64,000 nucleotides of DNA from Hyaloraphidium curvatum SAG 235-1 (lineage: Eukaryota; Fungi; Monoblepharomycota). The position numbers and the translations under genes were made by a program. The DNA lies in the NCBI GenBank assembly GCA_025558095.1, contig JAIVFI010000005.1, positions 873,393 to 937,392 of the forward strand, in the 5' to 3' direction. The notes under the pieces are model-generated. The model saw nothing but the letters and a program-made list of their open reading frames with translations. It had not been told where the DNA came from and did not search any database. Position 1 is the stretch's first letter, and each line of letters begins with the position of its first letter. Shown piece after piece: positions 28,034 through 37,470 of this stretch.

Positions 28034-29395
28034 TCACCGCCCCTTCCCGCATTCGTTCGGCAGCCCCACCTCCCCCCCCCTCAGCATCGCCTCCGCCACT
28101 TCCACGTTCCTCCGCATCAGACACTCCCTGTTTTCCAACAGCCTCGAGAGCATCCCCCCGTACTCCCCCTCCTTCCCCACCATCGCCTTGTGCGCCGCTA
28201 GAACGGTCCCGTCCTCGGGGTTAAAGTGCGCCCGCGGATCGAGGAACGAATACAGCGCGAGCACCTCCGCGGGCACGGCGAGGGGCGTGAGAGAGACGAG
28301 CGAATTGAACAGCACCGACGAGGCGGTGTGCACCGTGTACCCGGCCCCCGTTTTGAACGCCGGGAGGAGCGCGCGGGCGAGTGGGAAGTGCTTGAAGAAC
28401 TCGCCGTATGGCACCCTCCTCCCCCCTCCCGGCAGGTCGACCAACCCGTTTTGGAGGAGCGCTGGGGGGATGGTCGCGTTGGCGTGCGGCGGGCCGAAGG
28501 AGCCCAGCAGGCGCACGGGGAGGGCCGGGGAGCCAGCCGGCGGGGGGGAGGTTTCCAGTTCGCGGAAGACGGAGGCGTAGTCCCGCCGCGTGGTGTCGAG
28601 CTGTCCACCGATCCCGAGCCCGCGGCGGGAGGTGGAGTTCCACCCCTCCGGGAACAGGGGGTACAGGCTCGAGAGGTAGTCCACCTTCCCAGGGCCGAAC
28701 GACCGCATGACGTCCGCGGTGTGAGGGGCGGTGCCAAGGACGTAGGAGGGTCTGAGCCAGGCGAGCTGCCGCGCGGCCAGGGGCTTGGAGAAGTGGTCCG
28801 CGATGTGGACCATCACGGCGATGATGGGCCGTTGCCCGCCGTCCGGGCAGGAAAGCCAATGAGCGGCCGCGGTCTCGTTGATCGGGGGATGGTACTGGTC
28901 GAACGGTGCCGTCACGATCAGAACGAATTTGTAGGAGCACGCGGCTGGCCAAAAGTCAGCGGCGGGTTTGGCCGGGAGGGGATGCCACGAGCGCATGACC
29001 TCGGAGATGCCCTGGTCCCACCCTGGGAGCGTGTAAAGGTCCACATAGGGACGCGGAGCGATCGAGGACAAGATGAACGTGTGGGCGGCGTAGACCTCGT
29101 GGTGCCACGACACGTCGTTGAAGATGGCGACGCGGGGCCGGCGAGTGGGGGCGCCATCGTAGGCCGCCGCGCCCTCAGTCCCCTCAAGGGCCTCCTTAGA
29201 ATATGACGAGCCGTGCGGAGGGCCCAGCGGGGTCCAATCGCCACCGGAGCCCACGAGCGTTCGCCAGATCCCGGCGACGAGGGCGGCGGCGAGGGCTAGG
29301 CGGAGGACGCGTCCGGCGGCGTTGTGCCACCGCCCTGCGGCGCCCTGGAGAGGCGGCGGCGGGCGTTCGCGGCCGTCGTTCGACGGCCGCCCCAT
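28034..29395 (-). CDS. Putative type II membrane glycosyltransferase (GT-B-like), intronless; alternative ATG at 29524
   Basis: Short cytosolic N-terminus, TM VLRLALAAALVAGIW, stem, then VAIFNDVSWHHEV, MVHIAD, IGGQLDTTRRDY, VRLLGS, PYGEFF...LLPAF...TASSVLFNSL...PL. Function inferred from topology and motif style. Confidence 0.55.
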   Translation of the reverse strand: MGRPSNDGRERPPPPLQGAAGRWHNAAGRVLRLALAAALVAGIWRTLVGSGGDWTPLGPPHGSSYSKEALEGTEGAAAYDGAPTRRPRVAIFNDVSWHHEVYAAHTFILSSIAPRPYVDLYTLPGWDQGISEVMRSWHPLPAKPAADFWPAACSYKFVLIVTAPFDQYHPPINETAAAHWLSCPDGGQRPIIAVMVHIADHFSKPLAARQLAWLRPSYVLGTAPHTADVMRSFGPGKVDYLSSLYPLFPEGWNSTSRRGLGIGGQLDTTRRDYASVFRELETSPPPAGSPALPVRLLGSFGPPHANATIPPALLQNGLVDLPGGGRRVPYGEFFKHFPLARALLPAFKTGAGYTVHTASSVLFNSLVSLTPLAVPAEVLALYSFLDPRAHFNPEDGTVLAAHKAMVGKEGEYGGMLSRLLENRECLMRRNVEVAEAMLRGGEVGLPNECGKGR

Positions 29396-29653
29396 GCAAT
29401 GGTACAGGATGGTTTGTGTACGGAAGGTGCGGTGGTCGCGACCCGGCTTCGGGCCGAACCGATTCAGCCACGCAGCGTCCCGTCGCCGCAGGACGATGTC
29501 TTCCCTCTCTTCTATGGCCAACATCGAAAATGGCCTGCTAATGATGTCGTCGCTTTCCCTCTCTTTTCTCTCCTCACTCGCCCCGCTTTCTGATATCTCG
29601 CCCTGGCGCCACCCGCGACGAGTCAGCCCTGTCCGCTTGCTCTACCCCGCGGC

Positions 29654-32017
29654 CTAATCTCCAAGCTTGGCACGGTTCGCCCGGTACCACTCCACCGTCT
29701 CGCGGATGCTCTCCGCCAGCGGCGCGAATCTAAAGTCGGGGCACGCGGCCTCGAACACGCTGGTATCCGCCGTCCTCCTGAGCGGCCCATCCACCGCGTC
29801 GGTGTCGAAGGCCAGCCCCCCCTTGAACCCGGCCGCATCTGCAACCATGCCCGCAATCTCCCTGATCGAGTGCTCCGGCCCCGCAACAATCAGCGGCTCC
29901 CCTCCGCGGTGATGCTCCAGCGCCCACATCAGCGCCCGCGCGAGGTCGCGCGCGTGCATGAGCTGCCGCAGGGGCCGGCCGGTGCCCATCACCTTGAGCG
30001 GCGCGTCTCCTCCCACTTCTCCCGCCGCGATGGATTTGGCGATGAGCGCATTGACCAGTGGCGCCGTGGCGGCCCCGAAATCCCCGTGCGCGCCGAAGAA
30101 GTTGCCCGGCAGCACGGTGGAGAAATCCTCCCCGTGTTCCTTGTTGTACCAACGCGTGAGCGCAGCGAGCGCGCGCTTGGCCAGCGCGTACGACTCCCCG
30201 GCGGGGTGCAGGGTGCCTTCCTCCGCCTGCGACGCGGTGACGGGGTAGGTCGCATCCTTGGGGAACATGACCGTGGAGAGCACCGACACCACCCGAACGG
30301 GTCCGCACAGGTCGCGCATGTCGTGCGCCGAGCTGAGCACGTTGTTGTTGGCGGCGACGTTGCCGAGCCAGAACTCCACGGGGCGGGCGGTCATCTCGTT
30401 GAGCGACTGCAAGCTGGCGGCGAGGTGCAGCACCTGGGTCGGCTGCACGCGGCGGAAGAGGGCTGAAGTGGCGAGGGGGTCGGTGAGATCGGCGTTTGCG
30501 CGGCGGGCAAAGAACCATTCTGTCGAGGAGGCATCGTCGGATGGGGGGCGATCGCAGCCGACAGCGCTGAGGCCGCAGCCGTTGGTGATTGGTGCACCCT
30601 GAGCCGTCCTTTGCCCGTTGGAGAGCCGAAGCACCTCGGCCTCCACCGCGCGCCCGAGCATGCCCGCCGATCCGGTAACCAGCACCACATGATGGGGCCG
30701 GAACTCAAAGCCCAACAGCGCATCCACCAGGAACGCGACGTCGGCGTCGCTGACGGGCGAATGGTGCACCCCAACAAAGAATCCGCGCGTGTGCAGCACC
30801 TCCGCTCCCGGGAAGTCCGACGGCCGCAGCCCCGGCATCGCGGCGGCTACCATCGGCTGGCGGGCAAAGTTGCCACTCACGATCGGGCGGTTTTCCACGC
30901 CTGCCGCCGTGAGGTGCGCAAGGAAGGCCCGCAGCTGGTGGGCGTACTTGCGGCGGAGTACGAGGCCGACCCCGAACCACGCGGGATCGGTGCCCTCCGC
31001 GGCCCGCATCAGCGACATCCTGTCCGCGAACCGCGCATCGGCTTTCAAAGCGGCCTCGATCCTGGAGAGGTTGTCCTTGCGGCACGCGTTGAACTCCTCC
31101 AGCTTCCCCAGCTGCACCCTGAGCATGGCCCCTTGCACCTCCAGCGGCCTCACGTTGAACCCGGCCCCCACGAACAGGAACCGCGGGTCGATGTCCGGGT
31201 GCGCTGCTTCCGTTTTCGAGCGATCAGCGTCGTGCCGCGTCCAGCCGTGCGCTCGAAGGCGGCGGAGGCGGTCCGCATCGGCGGGGGTGCGGCAGACGAC
31301 CATGCCGCCCTCGCCCGAGGTGATGTGGTGCGAGAAGTAGAAGGAGAAGGCGCCGAACTCGCCAAAGGTGCCGAGCATCCGAGGGGGAGACTTGCCGATC
31401 GTGGAGCGGGAGCCGAGAGCCTCGCAGGCGTCCTCGATCAGAAGCAGGTTGCGGGCGCGGGCGAGGTCCAGCATGAGGGCCATCTCGGCCGAGTTGCCGA
31501 GCACGTGCACGGCCATCAGCCCCCGCACCCCTGGGTTCGCTTCGCACGCGGCCGCCAGCGCCGGCAGCGATATGTTGAACGTCCCCGGATCGACGTCGAC
31601 AAACACCGGCTTGAGCCCCAGCTGCAGCATTGGAGCCACCGATGTCGACCAGCACACCGCCGGCACGAGCACCGCGTCGCCCCTCTCCAACTTTTGCTCC
31701 CTCGAGGGGTCCATCAGCGCGCACAGCATCAGCAAGTTCGCCGAGGAACCCGAGTTGACCATGACCGCGTGCGGGGCGCCGACGGCCGCGGCGAACTCGC
31801 GCTCCGCGGCCTCGACGTTGACGCCCATGGTCAGCCGGCCGCTGAGCAGCACTTCGGTCATGGCGAGCAGCTCCTCTGCGCCGAAGGCGTTGGCGGCGAG
31901 TGGGAAGCGGGGTGCGGAGGAGGTGGCGGAGGTGCGCTCGGCGCCGCAACGGGAGGCCCACTCCGCGGCGACGGCCGCACGCCAGGGCGCCGCGTCGTCT
32001 GCCGGTACGTCGGGCAT
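29654..32017 (-). CDS. colD: Fusion of ColD-type GDP-4-keto-6-deoxymannose 3-dehydratase (PLP) and an FX/GDP-fucose-synthase-like SDR reductase; 787 aa, intronless
   Basis: N-half: FPLAANAF, NSGSSANLL, VHVLGN, IEDACE, SFYFSHHITSGEGG (His at the PLP-Lys site), LRAHGWTR, GFNVRPLE, ENRPIVSGNF. C-half: VLVTGSAGMLG, ADLTD, QPTQVLHLAA, LSTVMFP, YALAKR, PGNFFG, GTGRPLRQ, PDFRF. ATG 32017 in accATG context. Confidence 0.9.
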   Translation of the reverse strand: MPDVPADDAAPWRAAVAAEWASRCGAERTSATSSAPRFPLAANAFGAEELLAMTEVLLSGRLTMGVNVEAAEREFAAAVGAPHAVMVNSGSSANLLMLCALMDPSREQKLERGDAVLVPAVCWSTSVAPMLQLGLKPVFVDVDPGTFNISLPALAAACEANPGVRGLMAVHVLGNSAEMALMLDLARARNLLLIEDACEALGSRSTIGKSPPRMLGTFGEFGAFSFYFSHHITSGEGGMVVCRTPADADRLRRLRAHGWTRHDADRSKTEAAHPDIDPRFLFVGAGFNVRPLEVQGAMLRVQLGKLEEFNACRKDNLSRIEAALKADARFADRMSLMRAAEGTDPAWFGVGLVLRRKYAHQLRAFLAHLTAAGVENRPIVSGNFARQPMVAAAMPGLRPSDFPGAEVLHTRGFFVGVHHSPVSDADVAFLVDALLGFEFRPHHVVLVTGSAGMLGRAVEAEVLRLSNGQRTAQGAPITNGCGLSAVGCDRPPSDDASSTEWFFARRANADLTDPLATSALFRRVQPTQVLHLAASLQSLNEMTARPVEFWLGNVAANNNVLSSAHDMRDLCGPVRVVSVLSTVMFPKDATYPVTASQAEEGTLHPAGESYALAKRALAALTRWYNKEHGEDFSTVLPGNFFGAHGDFGAATAPLVNALIAKSIAAGEVGGDAPLKVMGTGRPLRQLMHARDLARALMWALEHHRGGEPLIVAGPEHSIREIAGMVADAAGFKGGLAFDTDAVDGPLRRTADTSVFEAACPDFRFAPLAESIRETVEWYRANRAKLGD

Positions 32018-32668: not shown

Positions 32669-34449
32669 TCATTTGCCCCGCACCTCGGCCGCGTACTTCC
32701 TCTCCAACCCCGCCCTCAACCTCCTAGCCGCGGCCTCGAACAGCCGATCCGCGGCTTCCAGATCCTCGTTCCCCTCCTTGGTCGCCTTCCCCCCCACCGT
32801 CCCCTCGTCTCCCTCCTCCCGCGGCGGCGCCGCGCCCACCTTCTCCCGGGTCCACGCCCACCCCTTCCCCGCCAGGCCGGCCCAGTCCGCCGCGGATCCC
32901 AGCAGGTGCAGCACGAGCGCCGCCGCGCACGCCCCCCCGAAGCACACGAACAGCCCGCCGAGGAATCCCCACGTCAGCGGCTGGGTGGTGTACGATGCCG
33001 AGGCCACGGGGCGCGCGGAGCAGTCCACCGTGCGGACGGTGGCGAGCGCGGCGTTCCATGCCTGCTGGATTACGAAGGTCTCGGTCAGGCCGACGAAGAT
33101 CTCCGAGAGCACGGCGCCGAAGGCCGCCGTGCACCGGTCGTCCAAGTCCAGCCGGTAGGGCAGCTGCACCGTCAGGTCGCGGATGTTGGGCCCGACGACG
33201 GTCAGGTTGCAGAGCTGGTTCGAGGCCTGCCATCCGACGATCTGCCAGTCGTTGTACGACAGGACGGCTGCGTCGCACCGCTGCGCCTGGAGGTACTCGA
33301 GCACCTGGGCGTTGGAGTTGGCGTCCGTGACGATGGGCTGGATCTGCGGGTAGAGGTTCATGACGAGGTCGCGGGCGGAGGAGGTGGCGCGGAAGCAGAC
33401 GCGCGCGCGCTGCACGTTGGCGTCGGTGATGGAGGTGATTTGGAGGCCCTGGCGAGGCGAGCCGATCCAGCGGTACGAGGGGGGGCGTCAGTGTCCAATC
33501 AGAACCACTTTCGGGGAGGAGCCCACCCTCGAGTTCTGCAAGATCATCAAAGACGTCAGGTTGGCGACGTAGAAGGCGCAGATGCAGAAGGTGAAGAAGA
33601 GGTAGAGCAGGTACAGTGCCCTCCCGGAGCGCTTATCCGGCAGGTAGGCCTCCCCGTGCCGGAAGGTGCGGGCCGAGTTGTACAGCGCGATCTCGGCGGG
33701 CGGGTCCGCCAGGGAGTCGGACTTGGGCACCCCGCGCCGGATCTCGAACCGCGATATCAGCAGCTGCGCGATCCAGTGGCACACCACCGCCACCCCGACG
33801 GCCACCCAGAGCGACCAGTCCAGTGGGTACAGGAAGATCCAGAAGGTCGACGCCGGCGGCGCCGAGTTGGTCTGCTCGTTGACGATGAGCACCAGGGAGG
33901 CCTCGAGCAGGGCGGGGGTGAAGGACATGCCGAGCGCGCGGCGCGACGAGGTGTCGAAGACCACGCGGGCGACGGTGTCGTAGTTGCGCGTGACGTTGTT
34001 GAGCCAGACGTCGTCGGACGTGTTGGCGGTCTGGCTGGGGATGAGCACGTAGTTCCCTGCCACCCGGAAGGGGGCGATTAGTCGGCAATCAGGAACGGGC
34101 CCGATGCGGTGTTCCCACAATCGAAGGCACCCTGGACGGCGGCCTGGTTCAGCACGTCGTACAGGAAGCCGGAGCGCGGCTTGCCCTCGGGGGTCAGCGA
34201 GAGGTATGCCGGGTTGGCGGCCGTGAAGACGGCGACGGTCGGCCGCATGCCCTCGAGCGCGCGGCGGGCGGCCACCGAGCCGTTCCGCACGGCGGCGGCG
34301 CGGTCGCAGAAGTCCGTTCGCTGGCCGGCGGAGGGGGGCAGCAGCGCCAGCAGGAGGGCGGCGAGGGTGGCGAAGAAGAGGGGCGGCCGGCCCCACCGGG
34401 CGGCGCGGCCTCCGGGCGGCCCCATCGGCAGCCGCGTCGGCCGCCGCAT
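32669..34449 (-). CDS. Ionotropic glutamate receptor-like channel (S1-M1-P-M3-S2-M4), about 2 introns
   Basis: Signal peptide; SGFLYDVL; RRALGMSFT; FLYPLDWSLW (pre-M1/M1); FYVANLTSLM (SYTANLAAF-like M3); S2 DAAVLS...CNLTVVG; M4 LTWGFLGGLFV. Confidence 0.8.
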
Positions 34450-34581
34450 CGGAGGGAATTGGGGCGCCGAGTCGGCTGCGGGGACGGCTCCGAGTGAGGA
34501 ATCGGGATTGTGGCTTGGAAAGTTCCAGTGTGGCTGAGCGGAGCGTCCCCCGCCGACCGCGCACGGGCTTCGCTGGAAACG

Positions 34582-37470
34582 ATGCGGGGCCTCCACCAGC
34601 CGGGCAGCCGGCCGGCACCCGCCCTCCTCCTTTCCCTCTGTTTGTTTGTTGGGGGCGCGGCGGCGGCGCGCGCGGTGCTGCCGGGCACGAGCGACGCCGC
34701 GGTGGCCGACGTGCCCTCGCAGTGGTCGCTCGTCTACCCGGTGTCGCAGGTGGCCCGCGGCGCGCAGCTGCAGTTCCCCCTGACCGCCGTCGCGGACGGC
34801 GAGCAGCCCGGCCGCGACGTCGCCGTGGGCCGCGCCGCGTGGGGCGTCGCCCGCGTGCCGCCGTCGGGGCCGCTCGCCAACGTCGGGCTGAAGCCGGTGC
34901 CGCTGTTTGCCGCCGGCGTGGCCATCGTGCACCGGCTGCCCATCAGCGGCCTGCTGAACCTGTCGCAGGACGCGCTGGTGGCCATGTTCGATGGCAGCCT
35001 GGGGGGGTGGGCGGACGAGCGGATCGCCAGGCACAACCCGGGGCTGTCTGCGATTGCCGCCTCCGCCGGACCACCCGTGCTGGTGGCTCCCGGGGAGCCC
35101 GTTTCGGGCCTGACCTTCGCCCTGACCTCGGCGCTGGCCAAAATGTCGCCGGCCTGGGCTTCCTCCCTCGGCGTATTTTCCGATGCCTCCAAATTCCCAA
35201 TACCCTCGGCGAACCGCTCCATCGGCCCCGAAGCCACGGTGCCGCAGCGCGTGTTCGCCACCGACTGGTCCTACGGCCTCGTCGACTACGCCACCGCCCG
35301 CGCCTTCGGCCTCCCGTTCGCCGCCGTGCAGAACGCCGCGGGCACCTTCGTCCCCCCCTCGGTCGACTCGATCCGCGCCGCCGCCTCCGCTGCCTACGCC
35401 TCCTCTCCTCCCGCCGACTCCCCCATCGCGGACGCGGGCAACGCCCCCGGCCCGTCGAGCTACCCCCTCGCCGGCACCGCCTCTCTGCTCCTCCGGGAGG
35501 GCAACCCCCCGGACTGCCGGCAGGCCTACGAGGCCGTGCGCTTCGCTTACTGGACCCTGCGCGACCCGGACGCGCTCGCGATCCTCCGCAACCGGGGTTT
35601 CGCGGATTTCCCGGCGCTGGCGGCGGCGGGGGAACGGGCGCTCGGCACGGTCCGGTGCACCAACGGGATCGCGATACTGCCGCAGGTCCAGGCCGACATC
35701 GCCTACGAGCAGAGCTCCGTGCGCGACAGGGTGTTCTTGATCTGCGTGTGCGTGGCCGCGGGGACGGTGCTCCTCGTGGCGCTGGGGTCGTGGCTGTGGT
35801 TCCGCCATCAAGACGGGGTGAGGAGGGAGGAGATCAAGGACAGCAAGCGGACGCTGGTCAGACTGCCGGCCGAGGTGGTCGAGCGCTCGCAGAGGGAGCT
35901 GAACGACAAGGTCAACGTGCCGGTGCTCGAGGCCGCCGAGAAGCCGGCGGTCGGGCCGACCGGCGCGGCGATCCCCGTGCCCGCGGACCCCGTCTGGCAG
36001 GCCCGCATCATCCGCACCCTCGGCGGCAAGGTCCGCGCCGTCTTCGGCCCGGCCCCGTACGACTCGCTGGTCTGGAAGCCGGGGATGCTGCACGCGCTCC
36101 GCCCCGCGAGCATCGGCGACACTCTCACGCGCGCCGGCCGCGCGCGGAGGATGTCGTCCGCGGCCGCGGGGGCGCCGAGGGACGAGAAGGGGAGGGTGGT
36201 GCAGGTCGCCGCGCCCTTGGCCGTCCGGCCCTTCTGGCAGGCTTCGTACCTCTCCCACGTGCTGGTCACGCTCCTGCGCACGCTGATGGACGCCGCGGGG
36301 CTGGCATTGAACTGGGTAGCGCTGTACTCGTTGCCCGAAGGGGTGACCCTCGCCACGGCCTACGGCGCGCTGTGCGTGATCGGCTCGGTGCTCTTTGTCG
36401 CGCACGCGGCCACGCTCTGGGCGGCGGCGATGGCGAGCCGGAGGGAGGACGTGGACATTTCCAGAGCCACGCTGCGGGGCAAGGAGAGGGTGATGCGGCA
36501 CACCCTCGCGTTTTTGAAGGCGGAGCTGAGGAGGGTGAAGCTGGCGTGCGTGCGTGAGGGCGTCAGCCGGACGTCCATGGTGGGTCGCCGCCCCTTCCGG
36601 AGGACCCGGTCGACTCGCTGACCCGGCCCGGTCCAGCTCCTCCGCGAGATACCCTTTATCGCCGTCACCGCCGTCCTCATGATCGACTCGGCCTTTGTCG
36701 ACCCGTTCGTGCTGCTGGGCCTGTGCGGAAACTGCGTCTCGCTGGGGTTCAAGGCGAGGTCGCTCCCCATGTCGCTGGAGGACTTCCGCGCGCTGGGGGA
36801 TCTGAGGGACCTGTACGGGATACTGGCACGGGCCGAGGGGGGGGCGGGGGACGGCGTGGTGCCCCCGGATGGCGATGGCGAGGCGGAGGAGGGCAAGAAG
36901 GGTGGGGGCGAAGGGGCTGCGGGGGTTGGGGAGCGGGAGGACGGGGACTCGGATGCCGGCGGGGAGGCGGGGGAGCTGGAGGTGGACGACGGGACTCTCC
37001 GATCGACCGCCCAGGGCTCGGGGTATCCGGCGCACGAAGCGGAGCTGCTGCCTTCGGTGGCCGATGCCGCGCTTCCTCCGCCTTCTTCAGACGGGGAGCT
37101 GGATCGTTTGGACGATGCCGAGCCCCGGGACGCCGTGTCGGCTGAAGCGGTTCCGCACGAGACGCATGGTTCCGCGGCGCCTGCCGATCGCCACGTCACC
37201 TACGCCGGGCTCGACGCCTCTGACACCATCCCACCTCCTGACAGCCCCGAGGACCCCAGCACCGCCGTCAACTCCCCCAAGCCCGCCGCTCCCGACCTGA
37301 CCGCGGACGCGGATACCCTTCTCGCCGATCTCGACGGCCCTCCGGCCCTGGGACCCGCAAGCAAGCTAGCGCAGCTGGACGATCGGCGGAAGGACGCCCG
37401 CGCGTACGGCGTGGAGCTGTACGCGAGGATGCTGGGAAGAAGGGAGGCCGCATCTCGCGGCGGAACGTGA
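34582..37470 (+). CDS. Receptor-like protein: signal peptide, PstS-like (PBP type 2) ectodomain, multi-TM C-terminus; 1 intron near 36580-36635
   Basis: PLFAAGVAIVH..LNLSQDALVAMFDG..WADERIARHNP, SGLTFALTSAL, VQNAAGTFVPPS, NAPGPSSYPLAG follow PstS; TM VFLICVCVAAGTVLLVALGSWLWF plus further TMs. Confidence 0.7.

Follow-up and report, generated by a model that had tools for sequence, protein, structure and literature searches.

The 3,6-dideoxyhexoses are regarded as sugars of bacterial O-antigens. In the bacterial GDP-L-colitose pathway (ColD/WbdK and ColC/WbdJ, known from E. coli O55 and Y. pseudotuberculosis IVA) a His-type 3-dehydratase that uses pyridoxal phosphate (PLP) and has no Fe-S cluster is followed by an NADPH-dependent reductase of the GDP-fucose synthase (GFS) family, in a GDP-mannose/GMD context. 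The CDP-tyvelose pathway of Salmonella and Yersinia (DdhABCD/E1-E3, Prt, Tyv) starts from CDP-glucose, deoxygenates by Fe-S/E3 radical chemistry and ends with a C2 epimerase. The capsule C4-reductases of C. jejuni (DdahC, MlghC, HS:3, HS:53) have the GFS fold with an altered epimerase dyad and carry out reduction only. C. jejuni also has a PLP C3-dehydratase (HS:5/HS:11), and the reductases turn 3,6-dideoxy-4-keto GDP-sugars into D-arabino or D-lyxo products in vitro. Among eukaryotes, tyvelose is known from the glycans of Trichinella (PMC9100689). Here we consider one gene in a 64,000-nucleotide stretch (the window) of contig JAIVFI010000005.1 of the fungus Hyaloraphidium curvatum SAG 235-1. 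It fuses a ColD-type domain to a paralogue of FX (TSTA3), the human GFS. This fusion is genuine and conserved, and in eukaryotes and giant-virus-like contigs it represents what seems to be an undescribed variant of the colitose pathway. Judging from its residues, it is quite probably a cytosolic bifunctional GDP-3,6-dideoxy-D-hexose synthase, which would dehydrate its substrate and then reduce it without C5 epimerisation. Our searches found no description of the fusion, of GDP-tyvelose, of a eukaryotic ColD or of a eukaryotic 3,6-dideoxyhexose route in the searchable literature, which misses most subscription papers.

The comparison with these systems can be put briefly. The fusion shares both kinds of enzyme with the ColD/ColC pathway, but it is a single polypeptide found outside the bacteria and its reductase is of the FX type, not bacterial Fcl. 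The Cys/His pair retained by the neighbours of bacterial ColD is missing, so C5 epimerisation is not expected and a D-sugar is predicted. On the likeliest reading that sugar would be the one made by the CDP-tyvelose pathway, 3,6-dideoxy-D-arabino-hexose, and none of the three special features of that pathway would be needed. The C. jejuni systems differ in having heptose substrates, separate cupin epimerases, other dyad changes (T/H, Y/R) and unfused genes, and their reductases are only distant relatives (E 1e-15 to 1e-29). Human FX (4e5y, 4b8z) has the same fold and catalytic triad; it lacks the ColD half and a 36-aa insert, and the host has a separate true FX.

The fusion is a single uninterrupted open reading frame (ORF) of 787 codons that runs from ATG to TAG (Table 1). 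The host assembly (31.9 Mb, 55 contigs) contains an SSU rRNA that reads as fungal in type, and other genes in it have short spliceosomal introns. A search across the host genome finds one copy, and its GC content at third codon positions (GC3; 0.89/0.85) is in the same range as that of host genes. Transcriptome-derived ORFs from other species also read the fusion as one frame. Pfam finds DegT (PF01041) in the first half and Epimerase (aa 445-707) in the second. The AlphaFold model has a mean predicted local distance difference test (pLDDT) score of 83.5 and a predicted template modelling score (pTM) of 0.83. Template modelling (TM) scores of this model are 0.85 against ColD and 0.90, normalised by the target, against human GFS. 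One can imagine that the insert is an intron, but this was ruled out: the closest relatives encode it and the branch-point pattern of an intron is absent.

The first half is of the ColD type. In a ranking of solved structures the four E. coli ColD entries come first (2gms, E 3.5e-64); E1 (5.5e-51) ranks below them, and perosamine synthase (5e-29) lower still. ColD is told from the aminotransferases and E1 by a His in place of Lys and by the missing Fe-S cluster (PMC8987622). Both features are found here. H230 aligns with the residue altered in the H188N and H188K structures of ColD, and it replaces the Schiff-base Lys of perosamine synthase and the other DegT aminotransferases. The Fe-S Cys cluster of E1 is missing and a ColD-like RAHGWTR stretch stands in its place. 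The ExRPIVxGNF motif follows the ColD pattern, unlike E1, and the profile for E1/DdhC/RfbH (NF011936) gives the N-terminal half 248.6 bits, under its cut-off of 423. The E375-N-R377 motif presumably has a role in GDP binding. The original prediction, made by reading the sequence by eye, had already called this half ColD and neither E1 nor perosamine synthase, and it was right. The positions it gave for the paired His (31325-31330), the Val (30269-30271) and the Pro (30059-30061) are exact, and correspond to H230/H231, V583 and P653.

The second half is an FX paralogue that has lost the epimerase dyad. Its best match is human FX (4e5y, E 3.7e-56), far ahead of E. coli GFS (4e-28), and membership of the RMD branch does not fit, since 2pk3 is matched at E 5e-4 and the domain is nested within the FX-type enzymes. 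S581, Y610 and K614 align with the Ser-Tyr-Lys triad of FX, and the Rossmann glycines (GxxGxxG) are present. R684, R748 and K661 occupy the sites of human Arg215, Lys282 and Lys194, which contact GDP (PMC12362431). Where human FX has C116 and H186 this half has V583 and P653, by alignment and with a model that closely superposes on the human structure, as had been predicted along with the intact reductase Ser and YxxxK. The alignment has no ionisable residue at the dyad positions that might take over from Cys and His. The sugar pocket is changed beyond the dyad as well: the VGG..N loop, Asn79, Asn140, Phe77 and Trp208 of FX are not conserved. The extra changes may adapt the clade to a 3-deoxy substrate. 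Since this half fails the dyad test that defines GFS and ColC, it should not be classed as a colitose or fucose synthase. Databases label the proteins of this family as CDP-hexulose dehydrase or GDP-fucose synthase, and the residue tests support neither label.

In a tree of 246 sequences, which the host FX enters as its main exon only, all the dyad-less reductases, 100 in number, group in a single clade (support 0.999). When the dyad and pocket columns are removed the clade is still single (99 by the Shimodaira-Hasegawa-like approximate likelihood ratio test), and it falls inside the FX-type enzymes, apart from bacterial Fcl. Residues were counted in 94 members after six degenerate ones were excluded. 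Not one of the 94 keeps the Cys or the His, and Pro sits at the His site in 92. The triad is retained (Ser 93/94, Tyr 93/94, Lys 92/94), as is Arg215 (93/94), and Lys282 is an Arg in 87/94. The FX clade has the Cys in 101/106 and the His in 100/106. The Fcl-type genes that adjoin bacterial ColD also retain Cys and His wherever the motifs can be read.

If the dyad was lost, is the domain simply dead, leaving a functional ColD half and a structural appendage? Human C116A and H186A are inactive, with no detectable activity, and did not become reductase-only enzymes (PMC12362431). Loss of the dyad alone is therefore no proof of a reductase, and with the 3-hydroxy substrate it does not produce one. 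The argument is conservation across the clade: this protein, like 92-93 of the 94 members from distant eukaryotes, keeps the triad, the Rossmann glycines and the GDP anchors, and the reductase is maintained as a gene of its own as well (P0090-P0100). Some paralogues on the rotifer branch (P0131, P0139, P0141, P0148) have lost YxxxK while their ColD half is intact. We consider a dead C-terminal domain very improbable. The converse state also occurs: P0033, P0045, P0047 and L146-L149 have an intact reductase and a ColD half without the His motif. Complementation between such half-degenerate fusions in mixed dimers is possible.

The reductase is not a fungal peculiarity. A search with the full-length fusion returned 56 clusters, mostly fusions, and nearly all of them have the same Val and Pro motifs. 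Named members come from bdelloid rotifers (Adineta vaga, UJR20075.1 on a 16.9-Mb sequence; A. ricciae; Rotaria socialis), a dinoflagellate (Yihiella yeosuensis), Chromera velia (Cvel_30606) and an amoebozoan (Phalansterium solitarium). Polarella glacialis shows part of the N-terminal half, and the ColD of Guillardia theta stands alone. A further sub-group is carried on AT-rich contigs that also have RNase III and Erv1/Alr genes; one such contig is in IMG/VR, and these contigs look like giant viruses. For both halves the eukaryotic or unassigned relatives are much closer than the bacterial ones: such relatives are up to 72% identical to the N-terminal half, and the best bacterial ColD is 52% identical. 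Phage matches reach no more than 31% identity. In 185,579 prokaryote genomes a pattern scan detected no dyad-less reductase, within the limits of the pattern used. A recent transfer from bacteria is thus not supported. The original prediction saw a chimera of a bacterial-type and a eukaryote-type domain, and knew of no fungal route to a 3,6-dideoxyhexose. The fusion is neither peculiar to fungi nor a recent chimera. The chimera holds only in a deep sense, as the ColD family is bacterial apart from such cases and its partner here is an FX-type reductase; the weak backbone of the ColD tree allows neither a donor nor a date to be given.

We propose the following pathway. GMD would convert GDP-mannose to GDP-4-keto-6-deoxy-D-mannose. 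The host has two GMD genes with the catalytic T-S-E and YxxxK motifs, as well as the intact, spliced FX with a normal dyad (both read exon by exon), so the GMD that the prediction looked for elsewhere in the genome exists. The ColD-type domain, with pyridoxamine phosphate (PMP), His230 and recycling by glutamate, would strip the C3 hydroxyl to give GDP-4-keto-3,6-dideoxy-D-mannose, as its ColD residues suggest. The FX-type domain would then reduce C4 with NADPH and leave C5 untouched. From GDP-D-mannose, after 3,6-dideoxygenation without C5 epimerisation, a manno C4 gives the D-arabino sugar, tyvelose, and the other configuration gives D-lyxo; with C5 epimerisation the product is colitose. A hydride face like that of FX would give GDP-3,6-dideoxy-D-arabino-hexose (GDP-tyvelose). 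We lean toward tyvelose, with moderate confidence, because the manno C4 is what FX restores, and the human C116S mutant keeps to it even with a C5-D intermediate, making GDP-D-altrose (PMC12362431). The HS:53 reductase of C. jejuni makes a D-arabino 3,6-dideoxy-heptose from an analogous substrate (PMC10440746). In the original prediction the domain identities, the loss of the dyad, the presence of GMD and the stereochemical bookkeeping are all supported. The C4 face is the less secure part, as the pocket is rebuilt and the Campylobacter relatives reduce either face.

The same two steps with the opposite C4 face would yield GDP-3,6-dideoxy-D-lyxo-hexose, a sugar for which we know of no report from nature. 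Across the clade, substitutions affect the VGG..N loop, Asn140, a D-N ahead of the His loop and further residues of the pocket, and the HS:3 and HS:53 reductases together make both C4 epimers, which means that the reduction face can switch within the GFS fold (PMC10440746). Against this, the clade descends from FX, whose hydride face persists on the C5-D intermediate, and the triad and GDP anchors are unaltered. We regard the D-lyxo product as rather unlikely.

Colitose is a second alternative end product. C5 could be epimerised by other residues such as E608 and D646, which show about 75% conservation in the clade, by the host FX if the intermediate is released, or by an undetected epimerase, and the C-terminal domain would then do no more than reduce. 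The dyad-less reductases of C. jejuni work with separate epimerases (PMC7949155, PMC10440746), and at one locus (L026) a split ColD and dyad-less reductase lie head-to-head and adjoin an intact FX. No RmlC-type or cupin epimerase was found in the host genome or beside the module, and the alignment offers no ionisable replacement for the dyad. If a normal FX makes colitose, as homology to ColC suggests, there would be no need for a separate copy without the dyad. There is also a separate lineage of ColD and FX-type fusions that retains the Cys/His dyad (P0195, 748 aa, and P0339, 706 aa). It is predicted to be a colitose synthase and so a natural control for dyad loss. P0195 adjoins a gene of 1503 aa whose domains include GT11 and galactosyltransferase. 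We think colitose is quite unlikely for the dyad-less clade. Fusion or clustering would shield the 4-keto intermediate from the host FX, which is expected to make L-colitose from it.

The surroundings of the module bear on a third alternative, that the reductase works mainly on the intermediate that has not been deoxygenated, giving GDP-D-rhamnose or 6-deoxy-D-talose, or that the pair acts on a different nucleotide sugar, for instance a GDP-heptose; the product would then not be a 3,6-dideoxyhexose. DdahC and MlghC reduce non-epimerised GDP-4-keto-6-deoxymannose (PMC7949155), the C. jejuni ColD homologue acts on a heptose (PMC10440746), and the sub-lineage with a degenerate ColD half has kept its reductase (P0033, P0045, P0047, L146-149). 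However, coupling to an intact ColD is near-obligate. ColD is fused or adjacent to a dyad-less reductase in 26 of 30 metagenome loci, the other four end at a contig edge, and 15 of the 30 have a nucleotide-sugar transporter of the TPT family as a neighbour. Because there is some redundancy among the loci, these counts should not be read as independent events. The neighbours GMD and FX are genes of a hexose pathway: the split form adjoins GMD at L151/L152, and one close standalone ColD adjoins GMD too. Split forms are also found beside transporters and GT10. The match to the known RMD structure is faint. This alternative is unlikely as well. It is likely, rather, that ColD, a dyad-less FX paralogue and a transporter make up an old and undescribed module, shared by eukaryotes and their giant viruses, for making a GDP-3,6-dideoxy-D-hexose, with GDP-tyvelose from a short GDP route or the D-lyxo sugar as its product. 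This product would probably enter the Golgi and end up on surface glycans, as the neighbours suggest.

Several points weigh against the synthase that we propose. We know of no carrier eukaryote reported to contain a 3,6-dideoxyhexose. All the catalytic steps and the identity of the product are, for the whole family, inferred from sequence, and we count this against our case. The human alanine mutants are inactive, as discussed. The non-epimerising HS:3 reductase gives D-lyxo, and many pocket sites besides the dyad differ from FX, so the C4 reduction face may have changed. No close orthologue of the module's TPT-family transporter was found in the host genome. Trichinella, a known tyvelose maker, is not among the named matches, and no direct search of its genome was made.

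Table 1. Features of the fusion gene and its neighbour (window coordinates).
Feature	Position	Strand	Basis
Putative fusion of ColD-type 3-dehydratase and dyad-less FX-type 4-reductase, intronless, 787 aa	29654..32017	-	ORF, Pfam, AlphaFold, GC3, single copy
PLP/PMP-dependent DegT-family domain, ColD type (aa 46-433)	30719..31882	-	PF01041 E 3e-69; 2gms E 3.5e-64
His230, equivalent to ColD catalytic His188 (Lys in aminotransferases)	31328..31330	-	Alignment to 2gms, 3b8x, 2r0t; invariant in 34 fusions
E375-N-R377 motif (ColD E-C-R; E1 G-T-R)	30887..30895	-	Alignment; invariant across family
Loop insert, 36 aa, low confidence (aa 463-498)	30524..30631	-	Coding in close relatives; pLDDT dip
Extended short-chain dehydrogenase/reductase (SDR) domain, FX/GDP-fucose synthase paralogue (aa 441-787)	29657..30697	-	4e5y E 3.7e-56; trees
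S581-T582-V583: triad Ser present, epimerase Cys116 replaced by Val	30269..30277	-	Alignments
Y610xxxK614 reductase motif, intact	30176..30190	-	Alignments
P653 replacing epimerase His186	30059..30061	-	Alignments; Pro in 92/94 clade members
Co-oriented 453-aa neighbour gene, N-terminal hydrophobic anchor, GT-B glycosyltransferase-like	28034..29395	-	ESM-feature neighbours, model, GT-B TM 0.46-0.49

The neighbouring gene has a hydrophobic stretch at aa 30-48. Its model is weak, and so is the match to the GT-B fold. It looks like a membrane-anchored GT-B enzyme, and it is a candidate to use the sugar made by the fusion. No homologue of it lies beside the fusion at the other loci tested, and no conserved pairing of the fusion with this glycosyltransferase-like gene was found. 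A longer, 496-aa model from the ATG at 29524 was rejected in favour of the ATG at 29395, since its 5' part lies inside a dispersed repeat. This is a 212-bp stretch (29407-29618) between the two genes, and contig C26 has an 82% identical copy of it, flanked by an SDR-like ORF and a membrane-anchored one. The neighbour belongs to a family of five GT-B-like copies without a Pfam match (the one in the window, C14:745159, C14:41984, C14:51130 and C6:830408). On contig C14, three of them lie no more than about 52 kb from a contig end. The ESM neighbours of this family include fungal and Nucleocytoviricota clusters.

Other observations concern the window and the sugar genes of the host. At 32669-37035 a ligand-gated-ion-channel-like gene (PF00060, E 6e-7) lies head-to-head with a long ORF that by eye resembles a receptor with a phosphate-binding fold, which is unusual in a fungus. 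The second GMD-like gene (C24:228139-229243, L013/L014) is divergent and has fewer introns than the copy on C18; it could have a role in rare-sugar supply or as a reductase. DegT-family genes for sugar modification number at least eight in the host (L003-L010) and include acetyltransferase fusions (L006, L007, L010). One of the eight, L009, is a second His-type DegT enzyme without Fe-S Cys. In the dyad-less clade, P0234 and P0359 (L109) have an extra C-terminal extension, with a weak GT2-like Pfam match in P0234 (E 5e-4). Its sequence suggests a triple fusion that may make and transfer the sugar.

A recombinant fusion together with GMD could supply a rare GDP-sugar enzymatically. The family is also a natural case of an epimerase-reductase becoming a plain reductase and so altering the stereochemistry of its product, with the dyad-intact fusions as the control. 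If our reading is true, this would be, to our knowledge, the first 3,6-dideoxyhexose pathway to be defined in a eukaryote, and a 3,6-dideoxy-D-hexose would be present on the glycans of this fungus, bdelloid rotifers, alveolates, amoebae and viruses. The family is conserved in a fungus, in animals and alveolates, in an amoebozoan and on giant-virus-like contigs, and this predicts that a sugar has been overlooked in their glycans.

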